DNA of 50,000 nucleotides from Salpingoeca rosetta (Eukaryota; Protista; Choanoflagellata), in contig JAWQFM010000019.1 in NCBI GenBank assembly GCA_033442325.1, positions 826,230-876,229 of the forward strand. The letters run 5' to 3'. Shown piece by piece: positions 1,576 through 22,634 of the stretch. The first letter of the stretch is position 1, and every line of letters starts with the position of its first letter. The translations under genes and the position numbers were made by a program. A model generated the notes under the pieces. The model was not told where the DNA came from, did no database searches, and saw only the letters and a program-made list of their open reading frames with translations.

Positions 1576-1684
1576 TTACCGTTGTTGGTGCACGTTCAAC
1601 AGTGAACTGACGCTGTGCAACCAGCAAATGGAAGCAAAAGGAGTGGAGAGAAGCGAGGGATGGGCAGCGAACACTACCACCAAG

Positions 1685-1730
<46 letters not shown>

Positions 1731-4700
1731 CCACAACCACACACACACACATACACACACAACCACACACAACCACACACACACACACAACCACACAACC
1801 ACACACACACACACACACAACCACAACCACACACCCAGCCCACACAGCACTCACTCACTCACGCCTTCTTTGAGAGGACAATGTGGCGCAGGGCACCGGC
1901 ACCTTCGCTGCGGCTGCTGACGGTGCCAAGGCTATCGCAAATGCTGTGCACGAGCTTGCGCTGGTACGCGGTGATGTGGCAGGGCAGGGCGCGCGTCTTG
2001 TCCGTGGACGCAACAAACTCTCGCACGGCCTGGCTCACGCGTGCATCTGTCCACGACGATGACGCGGTGGTGGTGTCGCGGAACACGGCCTCGCCGCCAA
2101 GGGAGATGGCCATGCACGTGCCCTGCGCCCGGAAGTGCTCGAGCTCGCGCCAGAGCGGCTGCAGAGCATTGAGCATCGCGTCCCGTGTCATCGCGCGGCA
2201 CAGCACAGCACGCACGTGCGTGTCCACGCTGTTCGCTGGCAGCGATTCCGGCCGCTCAAACGCATCCACAAAACGCCGCTGCCCCGTGAACACGCGAACA
2301 AGACCGTCACCAGCTGCTGCACGCTGAAGGTGGGTGATGTACGTTGGCAGGCGAGCGTGCAGGAACAAATCCGCCTGCCACGCCACGTGGCTGTTGTCGC
2401 CCGCAAATGCAATCACAATCTCAGACCCGCCGCCCGCAACATTCGAGGATGACGCCGACGCGCTGCCCTTGCTCTTGCTGGTGGTGGTGGTGGTGGTGGG
2501 ATGAGAGGCATGGGTGCCCTGTTCGTCGTCATCATCGTCGCCATCATCATCATCAGCAGCACCGCCCGTGTTGGTTGCCGGGCCCTGGTGCTGGTCGCGT
2601 GAAATCTGCAGCAGCGTGGCGGCCACTGCGGCATCGTGCGCGTTCATCTCCTTCCACCCGTGGCTCTGCACCAGCTGGCACAGCGTCGAAGTAGACACGC
2701 CATCGCTCCGCAGGAAGCGCAGCCAGCGCTTGCACATCCTCGCGACCTCTCCCCATGTGGCCGCCGCGACCGTCCCTCCTTTCTTGACGCCGCCTTCGCT
2801 CGCACCCGATGTGAGCAGGGCCTGCGCGTTCCCGTTTGCGAAGAACGACAGCAGCGACAGCAGCAGCGCGTCCCCCGTGGCGTGTGCCGACGTCGGGTCC
2901 GGCTGGTGCTCCCGCGCAACCTGCATGAACGCGGCAACGAGGTGGAAGCGGCGCAGGCCGACAACGCCCGTGCCGTAGACGCCAATCGACTCCAGCAGCA
3001 GCCGCGCCACCTCAAGCACGCTCGCCGCTGTTTGGATGGGAATGCCTCGGGCACGGAGGAGGGTGTGCAGTGCACGGTTGACCGCGATGCCGTCGAGTGC
3101 AATTACAGACGCGTCGTCGCATGCAGCGGCCGGCGGCGGCAGGAACGAGGCGCAGGACGTGATCTCCTCCACTTGTGCAGCGTGCACCACTGCTGCAATC
3201 TGTGATTGTGTGTTTGTGTGTGTGAATGCGTGTGTGTGTGTGATTGTATGCGTGATTGTATGTGTGCGTGATTGTATGCGTGTGTGTGTGATTGTATGTG
3301 TGCGTGATTGTGTGCGTGTGTGTGATTGTATGTGTGCGTGATTGTATGCGTGTGCGAGAGGCAGTGTACAGGTGTGGGTGTGAGTGCGTCGTGCGTTTTT
3401 TGATCAACTTCTAAGCACGGCCAGCGAAATTCATGCCAACGAACACCACAACCAGAAATGCACACCAACAACACCACCATATCACCACCCATCCTCATCG
3501 TCACAACGCGAAACACCGACCAGGTCAAGGGTGACGGTGGCTGCGTTGGTGCAGGCAATCCTGGCAACGATGCGAGGGCAGCGGGCCTTGTCTGCGAGAT
3601 AAACGTCAGCAGCACCTTCCTCCGCTAAGACTGCAAAGAGGCGCGAGATGAGAAACGCCGGCTGCACCGCATACGTGCTGCGCACGAGAGGAGCAAGAAG
3701 GCACACGTCCACGTCCGACAGGCAGCCGATGGTGTGCGAGCCAAACACAATCGCGGCCGCAGCATCAACGTCAAAGGTGGCGGCGTAATCTGCGCTGTCG
3801 GCACACTCGCGCAGCACGCGTGCCCAGCACCTGGTCACCAGCGCTATGCCAGCGGCGACGGCAGCATCGTAGCCGCTGGGGCGAGACAGCAGCCCAAGCT
3901 CATCGCACAGCGCAGCAACAGCACCACCACCGCTGTCGCCACCAGCAGCAACAGCACCACCAACAGCAGCGCGCTGCACTTGCTGCTCGTGCTCCTCCGT
4001 GTCTGAACCGTCAACGTTGTCGTCATCGTCGTCGCCGCCATTAGCAGCACCGTCACGACTGCTGTGATCGCGTGCGGCATCCAGCGCTGGTGCGGCTGCG
4101 GGGACTGCCAGAGACCAGAGCGTGTTGGCGTCCACCACATCCACACGCGCGCCGCACTCGGACCGCAGGGACTCCACGCCCTGCAGCGTCTTGCCCAGGT
4201 CGTCGATGAACGTGATGCGCGAATACCGGGCCGTCTCCCACATGTCGCGCACGGTGTCGCGCTTGAACACGCTCGTGTCCTGCCCGCCGCCAGGGTGGCA
4301 GATGAGGCGGAAGGAGGATGGGCACAGGCCAAAGGCTGCAAGCACGCGCTGCACATGCGCGCGCATGGGGGCCAGGCGCCCCGTCAGCACGACCACCTCG
4401 ACATTGTCACGTGCATGCAAGATATGACGAAACATCTGCATGGCAGGGCCTGGGAAGAGGGGCATGTATGGGGCCAGGCTCTCCGGCTGCGACGCCCAGC
4501 TGTCCTTGGGCCACGCTTTGCCGTGTTGCTGTGCGGAGGGAGAAGAACCAGAAGAGGCAGAGTGTATGGGTGGGATTTGGAGTGAGTGGAAGTTTTGTCA
4601 TGAGAACAAGGATCGAACGAAAGGAGGGAGAAGTTGAAGGTGAATTTGGGGGGGGGGGGAGAGGCAACCGCACACTGCAAGCGCGGTCAGACACTTGCGA

Positions 4701-7700
4701 AAAAACACGTGTGCTTGCACACGCGCGTGCAAGCAGAGAGACGCGTCACTGACCTGCCAGTAGAAACGCGAGCCTTCCTCCTTCCCTGGCACGAGCATGA
4801 GGGTGTTGTCAAAGTCAAACACATACAGCTGCGGCTTGGCAACGGGCGCTGTCATGTCTGGCAGCACGGCAGCGCTCTTCGCAATCGGCGCAACGACAGA
4901 GCTGCGGTTGTGCGACACGCGCGTTATTCCATGCGCGTCCCGGAAGCACACGCCAGCAACCGCCTCCACCTCAATGGCGCCATCAAGCCTGTTGACAACA
5001 AGTCCCCGTCCTGTACTAGAGGTGGCAGCATCTGCTGTTGCTGTCACCAGTTCAGGGGCGGCGGCTGCAGCTGCAAGGAGCGTGTTGGAGTACACGGCCT
5101 CAACGCCACCTGCGGTCGACACTGTAATGTGCGGATGGGCATTCAAACTCGCCAGCGCATCCACGCTTTCGTCATCGCCGTCACCGTCACCATCACGGGT
5201 GCGACGCCAGGACACGACCAGGGCCTGCCCGCGCGCATCATACACTTCCGCTTCGACGCGAACGGTCACACGCTCCCCAAACGGCAGCGAGAGCCACATC
5301 TCCGTGGACGGGCGGTAGGCGAGGGTGACGTGGTCCAGGTGCTCGGTCGTGTGGCGCTTGGGCAGCCGTTCACGCAGCAGCGCACGCGCCTCCTGCGTGA
5401 GGAACAGGCCCGTATACACCACCTCGCACTGGGGGCGTGGCGTCATGCTTGCCGGAGTGGCGCTTGCACGCGGTGTCAGCTTCACCTCGACATCAGCATC
5501 GGCAGGATTGGTAGCACCAGCGTTCTTCGATGCGTTCGCTGACGTGGCGGTCGTGGTTGCAGTCGTGCTGGCAGCGCCTGGCGTCAGCGCGGTTGCTGCT
5601 GCTGTTGATGCGGCGCTGTTGCTGCCATTGTTGCTGTCGTCGCTGAGGTCATACTGGTCGATCATGATGGTGTGCCCATCATCGGGGCTCTCCTCCCACA
5701 TGTTGTACATGCGGAAGAACACGGCGGGTTCGAGGTGGTGCGTGTTGCGCTGGAAGAAGCGAGTCGCCTGCTCCCGCGAGAAGCACCCCAGCTCCACCAC
5801 ACACCAGTCGTAACCGGCAGCCACGGCGCCCTCCACATATGCCTCGTAGCGCGATGGCGTAATGTTGGTGTTGTCCACAATCACCAGCCGCACACCGCTT
5901 GCCAAGCTCTCCCTGAACAGCTCTTTGCACTTCTCGTGGGCGGCCTTGGTCAGCTGCTTGCTCCACGCCTCCTTGTACGTCGTGTTGGTCTTGCGCGCAT
6001 GCCGCTCAATCTCGTGATCAGCGCTGCACACAACAACGCCGTTGGTGGCGGCGGTGCTGTCGCTGCAGCCCCTCGTGTTGCTCTCGTTGTCTGTCGTGGT
6101 GCTAGTGGTGCTCTTGGAGGTGTTAGTGGTGGTGGTTGTCGACAGCTTGGTGGCATCACCGGCACTGCCTGCTGGTGGCGCGGTTGATGTTGTTGTTGTT
6201 GTTGCTGCTGGTGGTGGTGGTGCCGTACCAGCCCCACTCGCAGCCTGAGGAGGGGCGCTGGTCGACGCTGCCGCTTTGCGAGCGACGGGGTCGAGTTGCT
6301 TGAGCATGCGCACGGTGGTGCTCTTGCCAGAGCCAGGCAGGCCCTTCATGATCACAACAAGGCCCGTGCTAGTGTTGTACAGCCGCTGCTGTACGAGTTC
6401 AACAGCAGCAGCGGCAGTCACGCCCACGCGGGCGTTGGGGATGTGGGCGACGCGCTGGTAGTGGCCGTCATCAGCCTTGTCCGGAGACATCCTGTCACCA
6501 TGGTAATGATGGTGATGGTGGTGATGGTTGGTGATCGGTGCGTGTGGCGTTTGAGGAGGTGACCGGTTAAGACAGGCGATAGGTAAGATGAGAGCATGCA
6601 ATCACAGTGCACCTCACGGTTGGCAGCAAGCAAAGGAGGACTTCAACCAGGTGGTACAGCTGAAAACGGGAAGGACAAGGCAGCGCTGGACACGACACAA
6701 GACCCGTGCTGACATGTGTGTGTACCTGTTGAGGTGTAGGGCCTCCACTCTGTGCCAAAGAGATTTCGGTGCTTCCAGACCGTTGCATAGATCAAGCGGC
6801 AGGCGGCCGTTCTGTCAAGGCGGGTGCATGGATGAACATGTGGCAACAGTCAATAATACCGTGTCATGTGTATACATAAAGCTGGAAATACACTCACGCA
6901 CGCACACGTACATACACACACACGCACATTCACGCACGCGCACACAAACGAACACACACGCACACAAACGAACACACACGCACACAAACGAACACACACA
7001 CACACTCTCACTCTCACTCTCACACGTACGTTCTGGAGGGCTGCGCGGGATGGTTTGACAATGGAGATGTGGGGCACAAATGGGGTGCGGTTTCCAACAA
7101 GGGCGACGCCTGCGCCTTCGAGATGCGCACACAGCTCGGTCACAAGCCGCTGAATGTTGCACTTGTGCTCGTTGACAGACGCATACACGAGCCGGTCCCC
7201 AAACATGGCTGGCGCCTCCACGAGAAAGCGGTTCGATGGCGGTACGACACGATGCACACGGGACCTGAGGTGGTGTGGCGATATAGTGTGTGGTCATATG
7301 GTGAATGGGGGAGGGGGCACTGCAAACGTGTTTGTGTATGAATATGTGTGTGCATGTGCTTGTGCACGCATGTGTGTGCATGTGCAGGTGTGCGTTTGTG
7401 CACCTGCATATGCGTGTTTACGTGTGCACAACGCTTTATGCATGCGTCGCACTGAAACAGCTTGACCAGCGACCACAATGACCGCACCTGAAGGAACGGA
7501 GGGCGAGGGCTGCAGCTGCAATGTCGCTGGAGGTGGCACAGCGCAGCGTCACGAGCGTGATGTGGAACGCTGGCGAGCGCGTGCGAGAGAGGGGGGAGCA
7601 GGTGTTGGTGTGAGTGCGTGAAAAAGGGAACCAAGTCATTTCACAAGCACACATGTACACACACAAGCAGACAGACAGACAGAAAGACAGACACACAAGC

Positions 7701-8830
7701 ACACAGACAAACACACACAGACAAACACACATACACACATGCACCAGCACCACCATCTCCGGGCAACCTTGGCTTGGGATGAGGTGGTCTGCGAGCCAGG
7801 GGATGCGGCTGACAATGGCGTCCTGCCAGCTCTTCAGCTGCTGCACGACAGACGGGCGGTCCACACGCAGACTGACAAAGTAGTTGGGTCGATCCGAGTC
7901 ATCCCGCACGCGACGCAAGCGCAGGCGCCGACCAACCTCGTTTGCCAGCCCATCATCATCACCATCATCATCATCACCATCATCGTCGTCGTCGTCATCG
8001 TCGTCGTCATTGTTGTCGCGTTGCGCATTGGCATTTGTCGCACCACCGGTATCGTCATCACCATCACCATCATCATCATCGCTGTTGTCCATCATTTCCT
8101 GCAACCTTGCCTGATGCTCGGCATCTGCCTTGGCCACAGTCTACCGTGCAACATCAACCAGAGAGGTGGGTGATCAGTGCGCATGTGCGAACGAAAGTGT
8201 GTGCGCGGATGCGTCGCAGGAAACCCCCAGCCACAAACACGACAGCCAGACGGACACTGTGTGTGTGTGTGTGTGTGTGTGCGAACCTCCTCTAGCTTGA
8301 CGCCGGTTCCAGCGCTTCCAAACACGCGATCCACACGGTTTGGGCGGTCCCAAATAATAGTGTCCCTGAGGAAGAAGAAAAAAAAAATGTGCGTCATGTG
8401 TGTGTGTGTGTGACATGGTTGAGTGTATGGTTACCATGCCGTCCAATGCATGGTCTTCCATCTCTAAACATGCACGCACCAAGCTTGCACTGCCCTTGTG
8501 TACGCGCAAACACGCAGCGCACAAGCGCACAAACACACAAACACGCAGCGCACAAACACACAGCTGCAGCATATGACTGACCTGTACTTGAAGTAGACGA
8601 TGCGGTGTCTTGGAATGGCCACGGCCTTGTGGGAAAGAGCACCAAGGTCGTCCACCCAGTTGAACTCATCAAAAGCTCGCTCCTTCACGCCAACAAAGCG
8701 ATCTTCATACCCAACAATCACAAGGCTAGACGAAATCGTGCTATCCCACCTATGGTGTTGTTCACCAAAATACAGCCAATTGCAACCAAGCGGATCGCCC
8801 AATCAACCAGTCATGTGAGTGGGTGAGCGA

Positions 8831-8902
<72 letters not shown>

Positions 8903-9066
8903 TGCAAAGTGGAGTGTACAGCGCTCACGGTGCTGCAGGCAGTAGGCAAATGAACGTACGTGATACGCTTAATGATGTCATCCGCGGGGCGCATCTTCCG
9001 ATCACGCGAAGCGTCGGGGCTGTTCGACTTGCCGGACTTGCCAGCCTTTTGCTTCTTTGATGGCAT
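1576..9066 (-). CDS. Multi-domain RNA end-healing/repair protein ('Swiss-army-knife' type, LENG9-like N-terminus): MJ1316 - 2H (AKAP7-like) - P-loop PNK - 2H - HAD - pol-beta NTase/PAP-like - R3H; ~1749 aa
   Basis: Exons 9066-8960, 8749-8582, 8365-8287, 8140-7768, 7569-7488, 7264-7030, 6811-6726, 6491-4754, 4528-3521, 3199-1863, 1612-1576. All introns are GT-AG, phases are consistent and the total is 5250 nt. Motifs: MRPADDIIKRITWD..VGYEDRF..IPRHRIVYFK..WDR (MJ1316); RPNYFVSL..HITL..PHISI (2H); MKGLPGSGKST..SADH..VIVDNTN (kinase); DHVTL..PHITV (2H); VFDFDNTL..LTGR..FK..FIDD (HAD); FGS..SDVD..TLDL (NTase); QRKLVH..SRSEG (R3H). Confidence 0.85.
3201..3352. repeat. Intronic degenerate minisatellite (GTGATTGTATGC/GT variants)
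   Basis: Tandem gtgattgtatg(t/c)gtg units directly visible, abutting the minus-strand splice acceptor at 3200-3201. Confidence 0.7.
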
Positions 9067-9705
9067 GGTCCTCGGTTACACACACGGGTCAACGCGGCCA
9101 GAAACGAGGCGAAGATCAGCTAGAGATGAAAATATAAAAGGGGGTGCGCAAGAAAGAAACGCGATCTGCTTGGCTTGCTTCAAAGCGAAGATGGTCTGTA
9201 TCTTCTTCTTGAGAGCGAAGGCGTCCGTGTCTCCTTGATGTGAGTTCCGATGGAATCTGCAACAAGGGATGTGCGATCTCTGGATTAGTTGTCGAGATGT
9301 CAGTAAATGAACCACGATGACATGCGACACTGACATGCGCTCACACTGACCGCTGTCCCAATGGAGCTGTTACAACAACACCAGCACGCTGAAATGAACA
9401 CAAACAGGACCATTGCCAAGCGCGTAACAGCACCAACGAAATTTTGCTGGAGATTCAGCAATTCTTCCCGACTTGAGGTGTTTGGTTTGCCTGCGCACAA
9501 CGACAATCAACCAACCACCAACAACAACAAACCAACAGCACTCACTCACGGCTTTCGCGTTCGCGTTCGTGTTCGTGTTCGTGCTCGTGTTTGTTTGCGG
9601 GTCTTGATGGGTCGGTGGATGGAGGACGGGAAGAAGTGAAGGCAAGCGCCAAGCAGAGTTCCCACTCAGGCACAGACGCAGAGACACGCGCATGCGCCCA
9701 TCGCC

Positions 9706-16773
<7,068 letters not shown>

Positions 16774-17646: not shown

Positions 17647-20600
17647 CTAACGGCTGGGGTTGTTGTTGCTGCCACCAGGAGCTGTGGGAGAGTAGGACGG
17701 GGAGGTGGGGGAGTAAGACGGCGATGTGGGAGAGTAGCTGGGCGAGGTTGGGCTGTACGAGGGCGACGTGGGCGAATAGGATGGGGACGTGGGGCTGTAG
17801 CTCGGCGACGTGGGCGAGTATGACGGGGACGTGGGAGAATAGCTCGGGGATGTGGGGCTGTATGAAGGAGACGTAGGCGAGTAGCTTGGTGATGTGGGGC
17901 TGTATGATGGCGATGTGGGGCTGTAGCTTGGGGAGGTTGGGGAGTACGACGGGGAGGTGGGAGAGTAAGACGGCGATGTGGGGGAGTAGCTGGGCGAGGT
18001 TGGGCTGTACGACGGCGACGTGGGCGAGTAAGAGGGGGACGTGGGTGAGTAGCTCGGCGACGTTGGCGAGTAGGACGGCGACGTCGGGGAGTAGGACGGG
18101 GAGGTGGGAGAGTAGGACGGGGAGGTGGGAGAGTAAGACGGCGATGTGGGGGAGTAGCTGGGCGAGGTTGGGCTGTACGAGGGCGACGTGGGCGAGTAAG
18201 AGGGGGACGTCGGGGAGAAAGATGGGGAGGTGGGCGAGTATCCTGGTGATGTCGGTGAGTACGAGGGCGATGTCGGCGACTGGCCTGGCTTGGGCGACGT
18301 CGGGGAGTACCCGGGCGACGTTGGGCTGTACATTGGCGACGCTGCAGCGTCGGCCCTGGGAGACGTCGGGGAGTACCCGGGCGACTGCGGGGCGTAGCGT
18401 GGCGACGCCGGGTTGTACGAGGGCGACATGGCGCCAAACCCTGGCGAGTCCGCCACGGGGCTGCGGCCGGGCGACAGCGTGCCGTCAAAGGCGTGATCCG
18501 GGGTGAACTGGCCCATGATGGGGGTCTGCCCGCCGACGATGGAGGGCGACGCGGCAAAGTGGGCTGGGGTGCGGGCGCTGGTCCACGGCGTTGCCGCGCC
18601 CTCGCCCAGGTCATCGCCTTCCTCTGCACCGAGAATGTCGTCGTCGCCAACCAGGTCCGTGGGGCGGAACGTGATGGCCTGCGACAGCATGTCGCGGTCA
18701 ATAAACAGGTCAAAGTAGCCCGTGCCGACCGGGGCGAGGTTGCCCAGCATGATGTTCTCCGAGACGCCACGCATGGTGTCCGTCTCTGCGTGGGCCGCGG
18801 CCTCAAGCAGAATGTCGACCGTCTCCTCAAAGGAGGCTCGCATCAGGGCGCCGGTGCTCTGGCGGTTGATGCCGTGGCGCGTGATGGCCATCAGGCTGCC
18901 CTTGTTCGTCATAATGTCGCACAGCAGCGACAGGTGGCGGTAGTTGACGTTGGCGCCGCCAGACGTCACGACGTTGATAATCTCGTTCTCCACGGCCTTG
19001 CGCGCCGCCTCAATGCCAAACACCTGGAACACCTCCACAATGTCGTTGGTGGACGAGTTTTCCGGGTCGACGTGCGGGTGCGAGAGCACCTTGGCCAGGC
19101 TGGAGCCGTCCGTCTCGATGATCCAGCCAGACTTACTCTGGAAGGTGCCGTTCTCGTCATAGTAGCGCTTGAGCTTCTCCGGCTCCTTGGTCTCCGGCTT
19201 TGAGATGTACCCGCGCGAGATCTCCTCCACGCCCTTGAGGTGCAGGTTCTTCAGCAGCCGCTCCTCCACCAGGCGCAGCAGGCGGTCCGCGGACATGAAG
19301 TCCTCCATGCCCTCCTCGTTCTCCTCCACCTTGGTCAGGCGGATGCGCATCACCTTCTGCTTGGCAGCGGCGTTGGTCGTGTACACGCACTTGACCGTCG
19401 ACTCGAGGTACGACTCAATCTTCTCCTCAATCATGTCGCAGGACACGTCGCGCAGGGTCATCTGCACCGAGTCAAGCTCCAGCCGCAGCACCCAGGGGGA
19501 CAGGTCCTCGGGGTGGTAGTCTGGGTCGTCAAAGTAGTCCTGCAGAAACTCGAGGTCCTCTTGGATGATGGTGTTGCGCTCGTCCGGGTCAAAGCAGATG
19601 CTGCTCTTCTTCACCACGGCACTGAGTGGGGTGTACTCGAGGTCGTACAGGCAGCGCAGCGCGAGCGTCTCGTTGTCGCTGGCCTGCTCGTCCAGGAACA
19701 GCAGCATGCTTGGCGTCTTGGGGTTGCGAGACACGTTGATGATCTCCTTGAGGCGCGGCACGCCGAGCGTGACGTTCTTGGCGGAGTAACCGGCCTGGTG
19801 GAACGTGTTGAGCGTCATCTGCGTGGTTGGCTCGCCGAGGCACTGGGCCGCCAGCGGGCCCACCATCTCCGCGGGCTGCGCCTGCGACTGCGCAAACCTG
19901 TGCTCAATCTCGCCCAGCACCCACTCAAACGCCTCGCGCGTGAGGCGGTGCTCGTGGATGAGGCGGTTTGTGGCCAGCATGGAGCGCAAGTGGCAGCAAA
20001 ACTGCAGCGTGGTCGACTCCTGCGCGGCGACGCTGATGGGGTCGTCGCCCGGCACCACGATCAGCTTTTTTGTGAGCGCGTTGATGGAGGTGAGCGCGTA
20101 CAGCGGGTTGAGGTCCGAGGGCTGCGTGCCGTCAATGTGGAACAGCTTCTGCGCGTTCCACAGCAGGCGGTGCAGGTTGACGGGGAGGACGACCGTCTCG
20201 TTGCCGCGGTCGTGCACCTTGCGCAGCTCGTCGCGGTCGCGGATGAGCTGCTCGTACTCGTCCAGCAGCTGCTGCGCGGCGTCCTGCGACGCGGCCAGGT
20301 CGTCCACCACGTCCTCCGTCAGGAAGCGCCGCAGGGAGCGGGTGTTGGCGACGTTGGTGAGGAAGCGTTTCTCAAACGTGGCGTTGTCGAGCTTGAGGGT
20401 GAGTGACTGCGACTCGACGAGGGCGCCGTCCATGCCGTCCTCGCCGTAGTGCAGCTGCACCAGGTCGCCCGTGGAGTTGCGCACGGTGCCGTCGTACTCC
20501 AGGCGCAGGCCCTCCATGGACTTGACCAGCCGCCGCTGGATGTACCCGGTCTCGGCCGTCTTCACGGCCGTGTCAATCAGACCCTCGCGCCCGCCCATGG

Positions 20601-22634
20601 CGTGAAAGAAAAACTCGTGCGGCTCGAGCCCTTGGATGTAGGAGCTGAAGACAAACCCGCACGCGTGCGGGCCGTAGTCGTCCTTGACAAAGTGCGGCAG
20701 GCTGCGGTGCCGAAAGCCAAAGGGGATGCGCTTGCCCTCCACGTTCTGCTGCGAGACGCAGGCGATGATCTGGGAGATGTTGATCTCGCTGCCCTTGGAC
20801 CCGGCGGTGGACATGGCCTTGAAGTTGTTGTGCTCGGAGAGCGCCTTCTGCACGGCGCCACCCGTCTTCTTGATGACCTGGTTAAGGTTCTTGTTCACCT
20901 TGGCCTCAAACGTCTGGCGGATGGTGTGGCCGGGCGACGGCTCAATCTTGTCCAGCTGCGCGTCCTGGATGAGCTCGTTCACCTTCTCGTTGGCCGCCGC
21001 CTTCTCGCTGTCAATTGTGTCGTAGGTGTGCGTGTCGGCAATGGCGTCGCCGATGCCGATGCTGTGGCCGTGGATGAGGAGCCAGTTGTTGACCACCGTC
21101 TGCACGTTGCCGTAAAACTGGCGGGCGCGCTCGTGGCCGTGCTCCATCATGATGACGTGGATGACGCCGTTGGCGCGCGCGCCCATCGTCTTCTTGCACA
21201 GGATGCCGGAGATGAGCTTGCCGTTCTGGATCAGCACGCGCGTGTCGTGCTGGGTGATGTGGGTGGCGTCCTCCGCCTCAATCACGTTGCCGTCCTTGTC
21301 CCGCGGCGTGTCGACGGAGCCGTCGTGCTGGCTGTAAAACTGCACCAGGTTGATCTTGTCCGGCAGCACCATGGACACGAGCTGCTTGCCGGTCCACAAC
21401 TCCTTTGGCTTGAGCAGCGCAGGCTCCGGCAGGCGGCCGTCCCAGTTGGGGTACCACATGAGCAGCTGCATCATGTCGTCCTTCTCGATGAATGTGTCGC
21501 GGAACGTGAGCTTGCGGATGGCCGTCAGCGTATCCTGGATGATACCCATCACAGGCCGGTTGGCCTGCGGCGTCAAAATGTTCCGCTGCACCATCATAAT
21601 CTCCTCGACCTGTTGCCCGGGAGAAGGGGGGGGGAGGTGGAGGAATGGAAACGGAAGGAACAGAATCGAGCACGTGCATGAGTGAGTGTGTGAGTGAGTG
21701 GGCGAAAAGAAAGAGATAGGCGGGGAGGGGTTCAGAGAAAAGAGGAGGGGAGGACGACAAACAAACACACACAAAGAAAGAGAGAGAGAGAGAGAGAGCA
21801 GCAGCAGCAGCAGCAGCAGCACGCATGAAACTTATTCACACGCAGCAGCACGCATACAGAAGCACACACACAGCAGCACACACACAAACACATACAGAGG
21901 CACGCATACATCCACACAGCACATGCTGCTCGTACCTCCGCGCGGGTGCCGAGGGATTGTGGCACGTGCAAGTTCATTTCATCGCCATCGAAATCGGCGT
22001 TGTACGGGGAGGTGACACTGAGGTTCATGCGGAAGGTTGACCACGGCAGAACCTTGACGCGATGGCCCATCATGGACATCTTGTGCAGGGTTGGCTGTCG
22101 GTTGAAGATGATGACATCGTCGTCCTTGAGATGCCGCTCAACAATGTACCCGGGCTGGAGGTTGAGATCCATGGCGTTGCGCGCGTGCCGCAGATCGATG
22201 CGCTGCCCGTCATCGCGGATGATGTACTTGGCGCCCGGATGCTGGTTTGGGCCGCGGTCAACATACTGCTTCATGGTGTTGATGTTGAAGTTGGTCACCC
22301 GCTCCGGCACTGTCAGCGTCAGCGCCACGGATGTCGGCACGCCAACCTGCAGCGAGCACAAGAGTTGAGGATGAGGCAGGCCAGCAAATGCACATGGTGT
22401 TTGTGTTGCGACACACAAACGCACACACGAAAGCAAGTGTACAGCAAATACACAGCGGCGCCGCGCGTGCACACCTGGTCAATCTCGAGGTTTGGGTCTG
22501 GGTTGATGACGGTACGTGCGCTAAAGTCGACGCGCTTTCCCATGAGGTTCCCGCGGATTCGGCCCTCTTTGCCCTTGAGGCGCTGCGAGATGGCCTTGAT
22601 GGGGCGCCCAGATTTCTGCCGTGGACGGGTTAGG

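Follow-up and report, generated by a model that had tools for sequence, protein, structure and literature searches.

A predicted ligase-less fusion protein for healing and tailing broken RNA ends in Salpingoeca rosetta, and its kinship with animal LENG9

This work concerns a gene of the choanoflagellate Salpingoeca rosetta located in a stretch of 50,000 nucleotides (positions 826,230 to 876,229 of contig JAWQFM010000019.1, assembly GCA_033442325.1). This whole stretch is called the window below, and its own coordinates are used throughout. The present analysis identified on its minus strand (1859..9066) one expressed gene whose structure, domain identities, intact catalytic motifs and conserved domain order were observed: it encodes, in this order, an MJ1316 domain, a 2H phosphoesterase, a P-loop kinase, a second 2H phosphoesterase, a HAD phosphatase, a nucleotidyltransferase and an R3H domain. 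With a probability that we put at about 62%, this gene specifies one protein of ~1740 amino acids (aa) belonging to a ligase-less branch of the Swiss Army Knife (SAK) family, which would heal and then tail broken RNA ends. This reading draws on sequence comparison, on structure models and on analogy with known enzymes.

Gene structure and transcript

The window comes from a GC-rich genome of 55.4 Mb in 68 contigs. GC accounts for ~60-69% of the exons, and (TG)n/(CA)n runs abound in the introns. From the ATG at 9066 to the TGA stop at 1861-1859, ten exons (E1 9066-8960; E2 8749-8582; E3 8365-8287; E4 8140-7768; E5 7569-7488; E6 7264-7030; E7 6811-6726; E8 6491-4754; E9 4528-3521; E10 3199-1859) join into one open frame of 1738 aa, and an in-frame TAA lies four codons 5′ of the ATG. 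A preliminary description of this DNA had proposed a single phase-consistent frame of 1749 aa. Its length and the three introns that it named as possible breaks were reproduced: a version ending E10 at 1863 and adding an exon at 1612-1576 comprises 5250 nt (1749 aa) with 0 internal stops, and all its 10 introns are of the GT..AG type and measure 146-321 nt according to a scripted check. The last exon of this version (1576..1612, 12 codons) is doubtful. It is compatible in phase, adds AVSSLLNVHQQR before a stop codon and requires the removal of 1613-1862, with a GTGAGT donor at 1862. However, because the homologues terminate 2-7 residues past RHIVL, as does the unspliced form of the window gene (ending in RHIVLSKKA), sequence comparison makes the stop at 1861-1859, and hence the 1738-aa form, the likelier C-terminus.

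The preliminary claim that the gene yields one transcript was borne out by RNA data. Among 24 sequencing runs listed, 16 were guessed to be RNA, and eight of these contain 0.70-0.73 of the sampled words of the stretch, which is near its exonic share (0.69). Two raw stranded runs, together with contigs from two other studies, were mapped on positions 3100-9099 (6000 letters). First mates lie almost exclusively on the plus strand, which is the orientation expected of minus-strand RNA, and depth is ~0 in introns (the bin 6500-6699 being at 0 in 4/4 runs). Four joints (4528/4754, 7264/7488, 8365/8582 and 8749/8960) are listed directly, with GT..AG ends, and the remaining five were derived by contig arithmetic. 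For example, record 3 of the X4 contigs and record 7 of the X5 contigs contain 90 and 84 unlisted letters, which correspond to E7+4 and E5+2, and the depth of a bin equals the contig depth multiplied by its exonic share (238.7 x 70/200 = 83.5). All nine junctions within the mapped positions are spliced in frame, the intron 1613-1862 lying outside them. The intervals 6492-6725, 4529-4753 and 3200-3520, previously considered as places where separate transcripts might meet, are supported by RNA as spliced introns. Furthermore, one contig of 3869 nt (X5 record 5), made of 1395 nt beyond 3521, of E9 and of E8 up to 6175, puts everything from the R3H domain through the kinase on one contig, and another RNA contig extends ~150 nt upstream of the ATG without splicing. 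A 42-nt mini-exon inside 6492-6725, whose phase fits, was ruled out, depth being 0 in this interval and contig arithmetic leaving no room for it. Overall, several unrelated RNA studies point to a constitutive, modest expression of the gene.

It is barely credible that two or more neighboring genes were read as one, even if some features of the RNA data could be taken in this sense: no single read or contig covers the gene from end to end; breaks between contigs occur at 6176-6228 and at ~7946-7984; and in each of the four runs the 5′ exons are covered two to three times less deeply than the 3′ exons (777, 438, 239 and 231 for the X4 contigs), leaving the 5′ third with lower depth. However, these two breaks, which are the only ones, fall inside continuous exons within low-complexity coding repeats, the first within the kinase domain, between the P-loop and the catalytic Asp, and the second in a poly-Asp linker. 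Besides the in-frame splicing of the nine junctions, orthologues derived from transcriptomes are single complete open reading frames with the same domain order, and the exon joins of the window gene are collinear with them and with the other homologues.

Most of the introns inspected (1613-8959) hold (TG)n/(CA)n or related microsatellites, and reads or contigs from other loci stack on them (e.g. loose ends at 3299, 8389-8415 and 8529).

Domains and catalytic motifs

The order MJ1316-2H-kinase-2H-HAD-nucleotidyltransferase-R3H given in the preliminary description was recovered both by Pfam, run on exon pieces, and by hidden Markov models (HMMs) built from homologues without the window row (hereafter homologue-only HMMs) and run by script on the spliced full-length protein, where every module scored between E 1e-9 and 1e-38. 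The expectation that Pfam would recover the domains held for five of them (MJ1316, AKAP7-type 2H, AAA_33, Trl1/CNPase-type 2H and R3H), whereas the HAD and nucleotidyltransferase domains were recovered only by the homologue-only HMMs. The five catalytic centers are intact, as had been claimed, and their catalytic residues occupy columns that are invariant among 12-20 homologues. All the features described below lie on the minus strand.

The MJ1316 domain (8287..8979, aa 30-118) extends over E1-E3. It was detected by Pfam PF04457 on the E2 piece (E 3e-15) and by its homologue-only HMM (E 3e-35). Only 29 residues precede it, and Pfam found no RWD or CCCH match on exon 1. The first 2H phosphoesterase (6726..7897, aa 200-377, over E4-E7) is of the AKAP7/LENG9 type: two pieces match Pfam PF10469 (AKAP7_NLS, E 6.9e-7 and 1.2e-4), the homologue-only HMM gives E 6.5e-38, and the motifs HITL245 and HISI335 are intact. 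The MJ1316 match is unique in the genome according to a genome-wide search, and the window gene is single-copy. A second gene with an AKAP7_NLS-type 2H domain was found elsewhere in the genome (G000:C14:1284776-1285817, plus strand; three exon-like matches, best E 1.2e-10) and may be ASCC1-like.

E8 carries the polynucleotide-kinase-like P-loop domain immediately upstream of a 2H cyclic phosphodiesterase (CPD) with two HxT motifs. The kinase (5642..6379, aa 415-660) displays the motifs GLPGSGKST427, a catalytic-type Asp535, DNTN583-586 and R625/H628, with a disordered Thr/Ala-rich insert of ~80 aa directly after the P-loop; it matches Pfam AAA_33 (E 2.3e-12), and profile comparison with the PDB retrieved PSTK, PNKP, Pnkp1 and T4 PNK. 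The second 2H domain (4907..5419, aa 735-905), of the Trl1-CPD/CNPase type, belongs to a Pfam family different from that of the first. It matches PF08302 (tRNA_lig_CPD, E 7.4e-7), a match found nowhere else in the genome by a genome-wide search, and the CNPase catalytic domain by Foldseek (E ~3e-5); its motifs HVTL764 and HITVS831 are intact. A structure model of exon 8 is confident for the kinase and 2H cores and contains two disordered inserts, within and after the kinase. The best Foldseek match of this model, extending over both domains, is the RNA kinase of fungal Trl1 (6u05, 473 columns), followed by CNPase, PSTK and T4 PNK.

The HAD phosphatase of the DxDxT type (4097..4849, aa 925-1100) is split by the intron 4529-4753. 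Its motifs are DFDNT936, the T of VVLTGR, the K of FKRD and the DD of FIDD, and its homologue-only HMM runs across the exon join (aa 931-1094, E 2e-36). Comparison of the HAD-region profile with solved structures gave only E values of 0.45-0.8 (0.8 for Pnkp1). In the orthologues, this domain matches Pfam PF10307 (HAD_SAK_1, described as "HAD domain family 1 in Swiss Army Knife RNA repair proteins"), in agreement with the kinship to SAK proteins put forward in the preliminary description; in a closely overlapping alignment that includes the window piece, HAD_SAK_1 is matched by 10 of 12 segments.

The pol-beta-type nucleotidyltransferase (2636..3889, aa 1170-1480), made of a palm and a central helical domain, is split by the intron 3200-3520. 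Among its motifs (FGS1218-1220, D1229xD1231, D1290 and RCPR), FGS1218-1220, D1229, D1231 and D1290 occupy columns invariant among 17 homologues. Its homologue-only HMM spans the exon join (aa 1176-1420, E 4.5e-36), and profile comparison with the PDB retrieved MNT, URT1, PAP gamma and Cid1. The fold of the region from the nucleotidyltransferase to R3H was predicted from the Salpingoeca kvevrii orthologue, a sequence derived from a transcriptome (predicted local distance difference test, pLDDT, 90.8; predicted template modelling score, pTM, 0.80). By Foldseek, this model is closest to canonical poly(A) polymerases (PAPs; E 6e-11, 430-500 of 461 columns, 11-15% identity), far ahead of Cid1-type uridylyltransferases and CD-NTases. 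After an acidic low-complexity linker (aa ~1500-1560), a conserved alpha/beta module (2036..2398, aa 1560-1680; homologue-only HMM E 1.6e-9) lies between the nucleotidyltransferase and R3H and, judging from the model, is probably the counterpart of the RNA-binding C-terminal domain of PAPs. The R3H domain (1865..2038, aa 1680-1737), a single-stranded nucleic-acid-binding domain, matches Pfam PF01424 (E 5.3e-12) and, by profile comparison, the SMUBP-2 R3H structure (E 6.8e-12).

The preliminary description had also announced the absence of a ligase. This holds: the Pfam scans of the window pieces and of the orthologues detected no ligase family, and, once domains and models are placed, no folded region large enough for a ligase remains unassigned.

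Predicted activity

The protein is expected to act on the 2′,3′-cyclic-phosphate and 5′-OH ends generated by metal-independent endoribonucleases. MJ1316, which is predicted to recognize cyclic ends, and R3H would grip the broken RNA, and a 2H domain would open the cyclic phosphate. The chemistry of the 2H domains of Trl1-CPD and CNPase is established, and a domain of this type would yield a 2′-phosphate. The HAD domain would then strip the phosphate, leaving a 2′,3′-diol, while the kinase would phosphorylate the 5′-OH and the polymerase-like domain would extend the healed 3′-OH without a template. The product would thus carry a 5′-phosphate and a 3′-OH with an added tail; the tail could serve decay or end regeneration, and the 5′-phosphate could be used by a 5′-3′ exonuclease.

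These domains could also be read as a system of nucleotide second-messenger metabolism, in which the AKAP7-type 2H domain would degrade signals resembling 2′,5′-oligoadenylates or cyclic nucleotides and the nucleotidyltransferase would make them. Enzymes of the AKAP7-type 2H family can cleave 2′,5′-linked oligoadenylates (PMC8406329), and the nucleotidyltransferase has weaker fold matches with the CD-NTases CdnC, DncV and CdnB (E 7e-6 to 3e-5). However, canonical PAPs lead the fold matches by five orders of magnitude, over all three of their domains, and R3H, MJ1316, the RNA-type kinase and the Trl1-type CPD all point to polynucleotide ends. Therefore, we regard a role in such signaling as very improbable.

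Distribution of the family and relationship to LENG9

With exon 8 as the query, a full HMMER scan of 1.84 billion representative sequences retrieved 135 proteins at E <= 1e-10, the best match being 47% identical. Architectures were then surveyed by domain HMMs and Pfam in 162 proteins (150 best representatives and 12 cluster members). Homology searches with the nucleotidyltransferase region and with the full-length alignment were swamped by low-complexity sequences and returned only the query and one fungal protein, and a feature-based search of a protein atlas gave no match.

Of the 162 proteins surveyed, at least 23 show the complete order, from MJ1316 to R3H, and further members are truncated. 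Contrary to the idea of an architecture exclusive to this organism, this order therefore defines a conserved family, which counts at least 23 representative clusters. One of these includes the Monosiga brevicollis protein XP_001747935/A9V559, labelled "R3H domain-containing protein", and the full order also occurs in S. kvevrii, S. urceolata, Ancoracysta twista and the sponges Oscarella lobularis and Halichondria panicea. In a protein of the jellyfish Sanderia malayensis, the order is kept through the conserved middle module and R3H was not detected. The window protein groups with that of Monosiga (Shimodaira-Hasegawa-like approximate likelihood ratio test, SH-aLRT, 93) within a choanoflagellate clade (95). 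It should be emphasized that the domain families and the concept of such fusions are already present in the literature and in Pfam, and that an orthologue has been public for years. The distribution does not fit the earlier rationale that this protein suits a bacterivore exposed to ribotoxins, since the family extends to sponges, a jellyfish and Ancoracysta, a predator of other eukaryotes; this rationale was therefore rejected.

The link with animal LENG9 made in the preliminary description was upheld. The first 380 aa of the window protein match named LENG9 proteins with 26-31% identity (BLASTP against a database of 14 sequences; E 8e-32 to 3e-57; best match 31% over 356 aa). A search with the first 426 aa of a long orthologue brought up hundreds of animal LENG9 proteins, at 33-39% identity and 98% query coverage. 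The retrieved proteins comprise 430-550 aa with the order RWD-CCCH-MJ1316-2H, and RWD and CCCH domains also precede MJ1316 in the orthologues from sponges, jellyfish, S. kvevrii and Ancoracysta. In a tree of the N-terminal modules, built with an assumed root and with support values from a quick search, long forms are found in the Ancoracysta outgroup, in a choanoflagellate clade and in a clade of sponges plus jellyfish, the latter joining the LENG9 clades in one metazoan group (support 91). Since the outgroup, choanoflagellates, sponges and a jellyfish all have long forms, the simplest reading of these sequences suggests that the long form is ancestral and that LENG9 is a copy truncated early in animal evolution.

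The RWD and CCCH domains also bear on whether the protein could be a dedicated housekeeping processor of one stable class of RNA, such as the 3′ end of a U6-like snRNA, or tRNA or rRNA fragments at stalled ribosomes, to which many orthologues would be recruited by these N-terminal domains. The 2H enzyme Usb1 acts together with a terminal uridylyltransferase. Besides the presence of RWD and CCCH ahead of MJ1316 in the orthologues named above and in LENG9, the constitutive modest expression of the gene and its conservation as a single copy over a wide span of eukaryotes would agree with such a role, as would the fusion of MJ1316 to a mitochondrial release-factor-like peptidyl hydrolase (PMC6514570). 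However, the window protein itself is devoid of RWD and CCCH, with an in-frame stop codon shortly before its ATG and an unspliced upstream part in the RNA contig. Furthermore, five of the seven modules have disappeared from most animals, making an essential housekeeping role of the whole machine less plausible. A housekeeping role of this kind thus seems quite unlikely.

Comparison with known RNA repair systems

The SAK concept was reportedly introduced by Burroughs and Aravind in Nucleic Acids Research in 2016. Like SAK proteins, the window protein assembles several RNA end-healing enzymes (two 2H domains, kinase, HAD and nucleotidyltransferase) and R3H in one polypeptide, and it shares the kinase, the Trl1-type 2H domain and R3H with the ligase-bearing SAK proteins found by the same query. 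Unlike them, it has no RNA ligase, 3′-5′ exonuclease or prim-pol domain; it has instead MJ1316, a second 2H domain (AKAP7-type) and a PAP-like nucleotidyltransferase. Its HAD domain has the motifs of the HAD_SAK_1 proteins (DxDxT, T, K and DD) and is homologous to them, but does not itself match PF10307. In the ligase-bearing family, P0056 and P0021 (from the green alga Cymbomonas) carry RNA_lig_T4_1, a 3′-5′ exonuclease, R3H, an AAA_33 kinase and Prim-pol 4, P0014 carries only the ligase, R3H and the kinase, and P0029 keeps only a fragment of the ligase. The 35 proteins labelled 2H-R3H-kinase by the domain HMMs were taken as this family.

LENG9 (leukocyte receptor cluster member 9) has the same MJ1316 followed by the same type of 2H domain. 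However, its chain stops after this domain (~430-550 aa) and in most cases opens with RWD and/or CCCH, whereas the window protein is devoid of both and continues for ~1370 more residues, i.e. four more enzymes' worth of domains.

The succession of a P-loop RNA kinase and a 2H cyclic phosphodiesterase is that of the healing half of Trl1 (the fungal and plant tRNA ligase) and resembles vertebrate CNPase, with a match to Pfam tRNA_lig_CPD. In contrast to Trl1, there is no N-terminal adenylyltransferase (RNA_lig_T4_1), and a phosphatase and a polymerase follow the CPD; in contrast to both, the kinase contains and is followed by long disordered inserts. A genome-wide search for PF09511 gave no match, but its control was silent too.

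T4 Pnkp and bacterial Pnkp/Hen1 also combine a 5′ kinase and a DxDxT HAD phosphatase in one protein, the phosphatase of T4 Pnkp being described as a DxDxT enzyme (PMC3592404). In the window protein, however, the HAD domain is only weakly similar to Pnkp1, the order is reversed, a 2H domain is interposed, and neither the Hen1 methyltransferase nor a partner ligase is present.

A functional parallel, apparently assembled independently, might be provided by actinobacterial and fungal proteins combining MJ1316, 2H, Exo_endo_phos (EEP) and PAP-like domains, which would likewise recognize, open, dephosphorylate and extend RNA ends without a ligase. Actinobacterial proteins of ~950 aa are the nearest fold neighbors of the nucleotidyltransferase in the ESM Atlas (template modelling score 0.62-0.66, 330-346 residues aligned). 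Their clusters, of 387 and 75 members, carry MJ1316, 2H, an EEP-type fold and a PAP-like domain. The fungal protein P0305 (Helicocarpus griseus) has the order 2H-EEP-PAP-MJ1316, confirmed by Pfam. These fusions differ from the window protein by a phosphatase of the EEP fold instead of HAD, by the lack of kinase, second 2H domain and R3H, and by a permuted order, and only their MJ1316 showed sequence similarity to the window protein.

Canonical PAPs (PAP alpha and gamma, Pap1 and Pla1) share with the nucleotidyltransferase the three-domain fold, according to the orthologue model, and the catalytic GS..DxD..D motifs. However, identity is only 11-15%, the window domain does not fall into the Pfam families of PAPs, and it is embedded in a repair-type fusion.

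Fate of the healed ends

RtcB, whose gene is present in the genome, requires a 3′-phosphate or cyclic-phosphate end and a 5′-OH. Because the predicted product, with its 5′-phosphate and its tailed 3′-OH, would no longer be a substrate of RtcB, the enzyme most likely steers cleaved RNA away from direct religation and into another fate. Furthermore, the idea that 2H, phosphatase and polymerase activities are coupled without a ligase is strengthened by the actinobacterial and fungal fusions, since they show the same combination. The preliminary description went further in proposing that the protein tails RNA instead of ligating it, which is not established: besides RtcB, the genome contains an unlinked gene matching PF09414 (RNA_ligase-like; G000:C17:982943-983692, minus strand), with an EEKVDGAN/KVDG nucleotidyl-lysine motif and (CA)n-rich introns.

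This gene leads to the alternative that ends healed by the window protein are joined by a separate ATP-dependent RNA ligase, the nucleotidyltransferase only restoring lost 3′ nucleotides. In addition to the KVDG-containing gene on contig 17, the resemblance of the kinase-CPD cassette to the healing half of fungal Trl1 and the association of RNA_lig_T4_1 with kinase, 2H and R3H in other SAK proteins from the same query speak for this possibility. However, none of the scanned clusters with the seven-module architecture contains a ligase domain, and the bacterial and fungal MJ1316-2H-PAP fusions are devoid of it too. Trl1-type ligases need a 2′-phosphate, which the HAD domain would be expected to remove. 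Sealing elsewhere is therefore unlikely in our view, while deserving more weight than the other alternatives.

Several points weigh against healing followed by tailing. On the side of the domains, the HAD of the window is below the Pfam threshold (generic HAD E 0.14; no match for exon 9 entire), the scanned piece being incomplete because motif I lies on the preceding exon. The nucleotidyltransferase is also below the Pfam cut-off (MTPAP-like_central E 0.019-0.08; no PAP_central or PAP_NTPase), and its fold is that of the S. kvevrii orthologue, which was modelled since the window domain is split by an intron. On the side of function, the recognition of cyclic ends by MJ1316 is only a prediction, the need for two different 2H domains is unexplained, AKAP7-type 2H enzymes have the activity on 2′,5′-linked oligoadenylates mentioned above, and no function or assay was found in the literature searched for LENG9 or any module of the family. 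The PF09414 gene is a candidate ligase for 5′-phosphate and 3′-OH ends and could seal the very ends predicted for the product. Finally, the decrease in RNA depth toward the 5′ exons could result from a 3′ bias or from a shorter isoform devoid of MJ1316 and of the first 2H domain.

Genomic surroundings

The divergent neighbor of the gene (9706-12582, plus strand) is an open reading frame of 958 aa, rich in poly-Q and poly-T, with a Gln run of ~65 residues, other low-complexity tracts and no Pfam match. Further away, the minus strand encodes at 17650-21822 the largest RNA polymerase II subunit, including its tail of heptad repeats. These two neighbors do not bear on the function of the gene.

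Conclusions

The window gene does not represent a new kind of system but a well-supported member of a family that has so far only been predicted. Taken as a whole, its relationships raise a broader scenario, which we propose tentatively and with the odds rather against it: LENG9, which is also a human gene, could be the remnant of an ancient enzyme of seven modules that choanoflagellates, sponges and some cnidarians have kept whole, and this enzyme and the independently assembled bacterial and fungal fusions could together reflect a widespread ligase-independent heal-and-tail pathway deciding the fate of RNAs with 2′,3′-cyclic phosphates, in members with RWD perhaps at stalled ribosomes.

RNAs with cyclic-phosphate and 5′-OH ends arise from ribotoxins, stress nucleases and quality-control cleavage, and their fate in eukaryotes outside tRNA splicing is poorly known. 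The family described here is predicted to pack every healing activity and a polymerase into one chain. Since the gene is single-copy and expressed, this pathway could be tested in S. rosetta, which is genetically tractable. Follow-up seems most worthwhile for the link to LENG9 and for the parallels in bacteria and fungi, and a functional result for the window protein would be the first lead for the function of LENG9.

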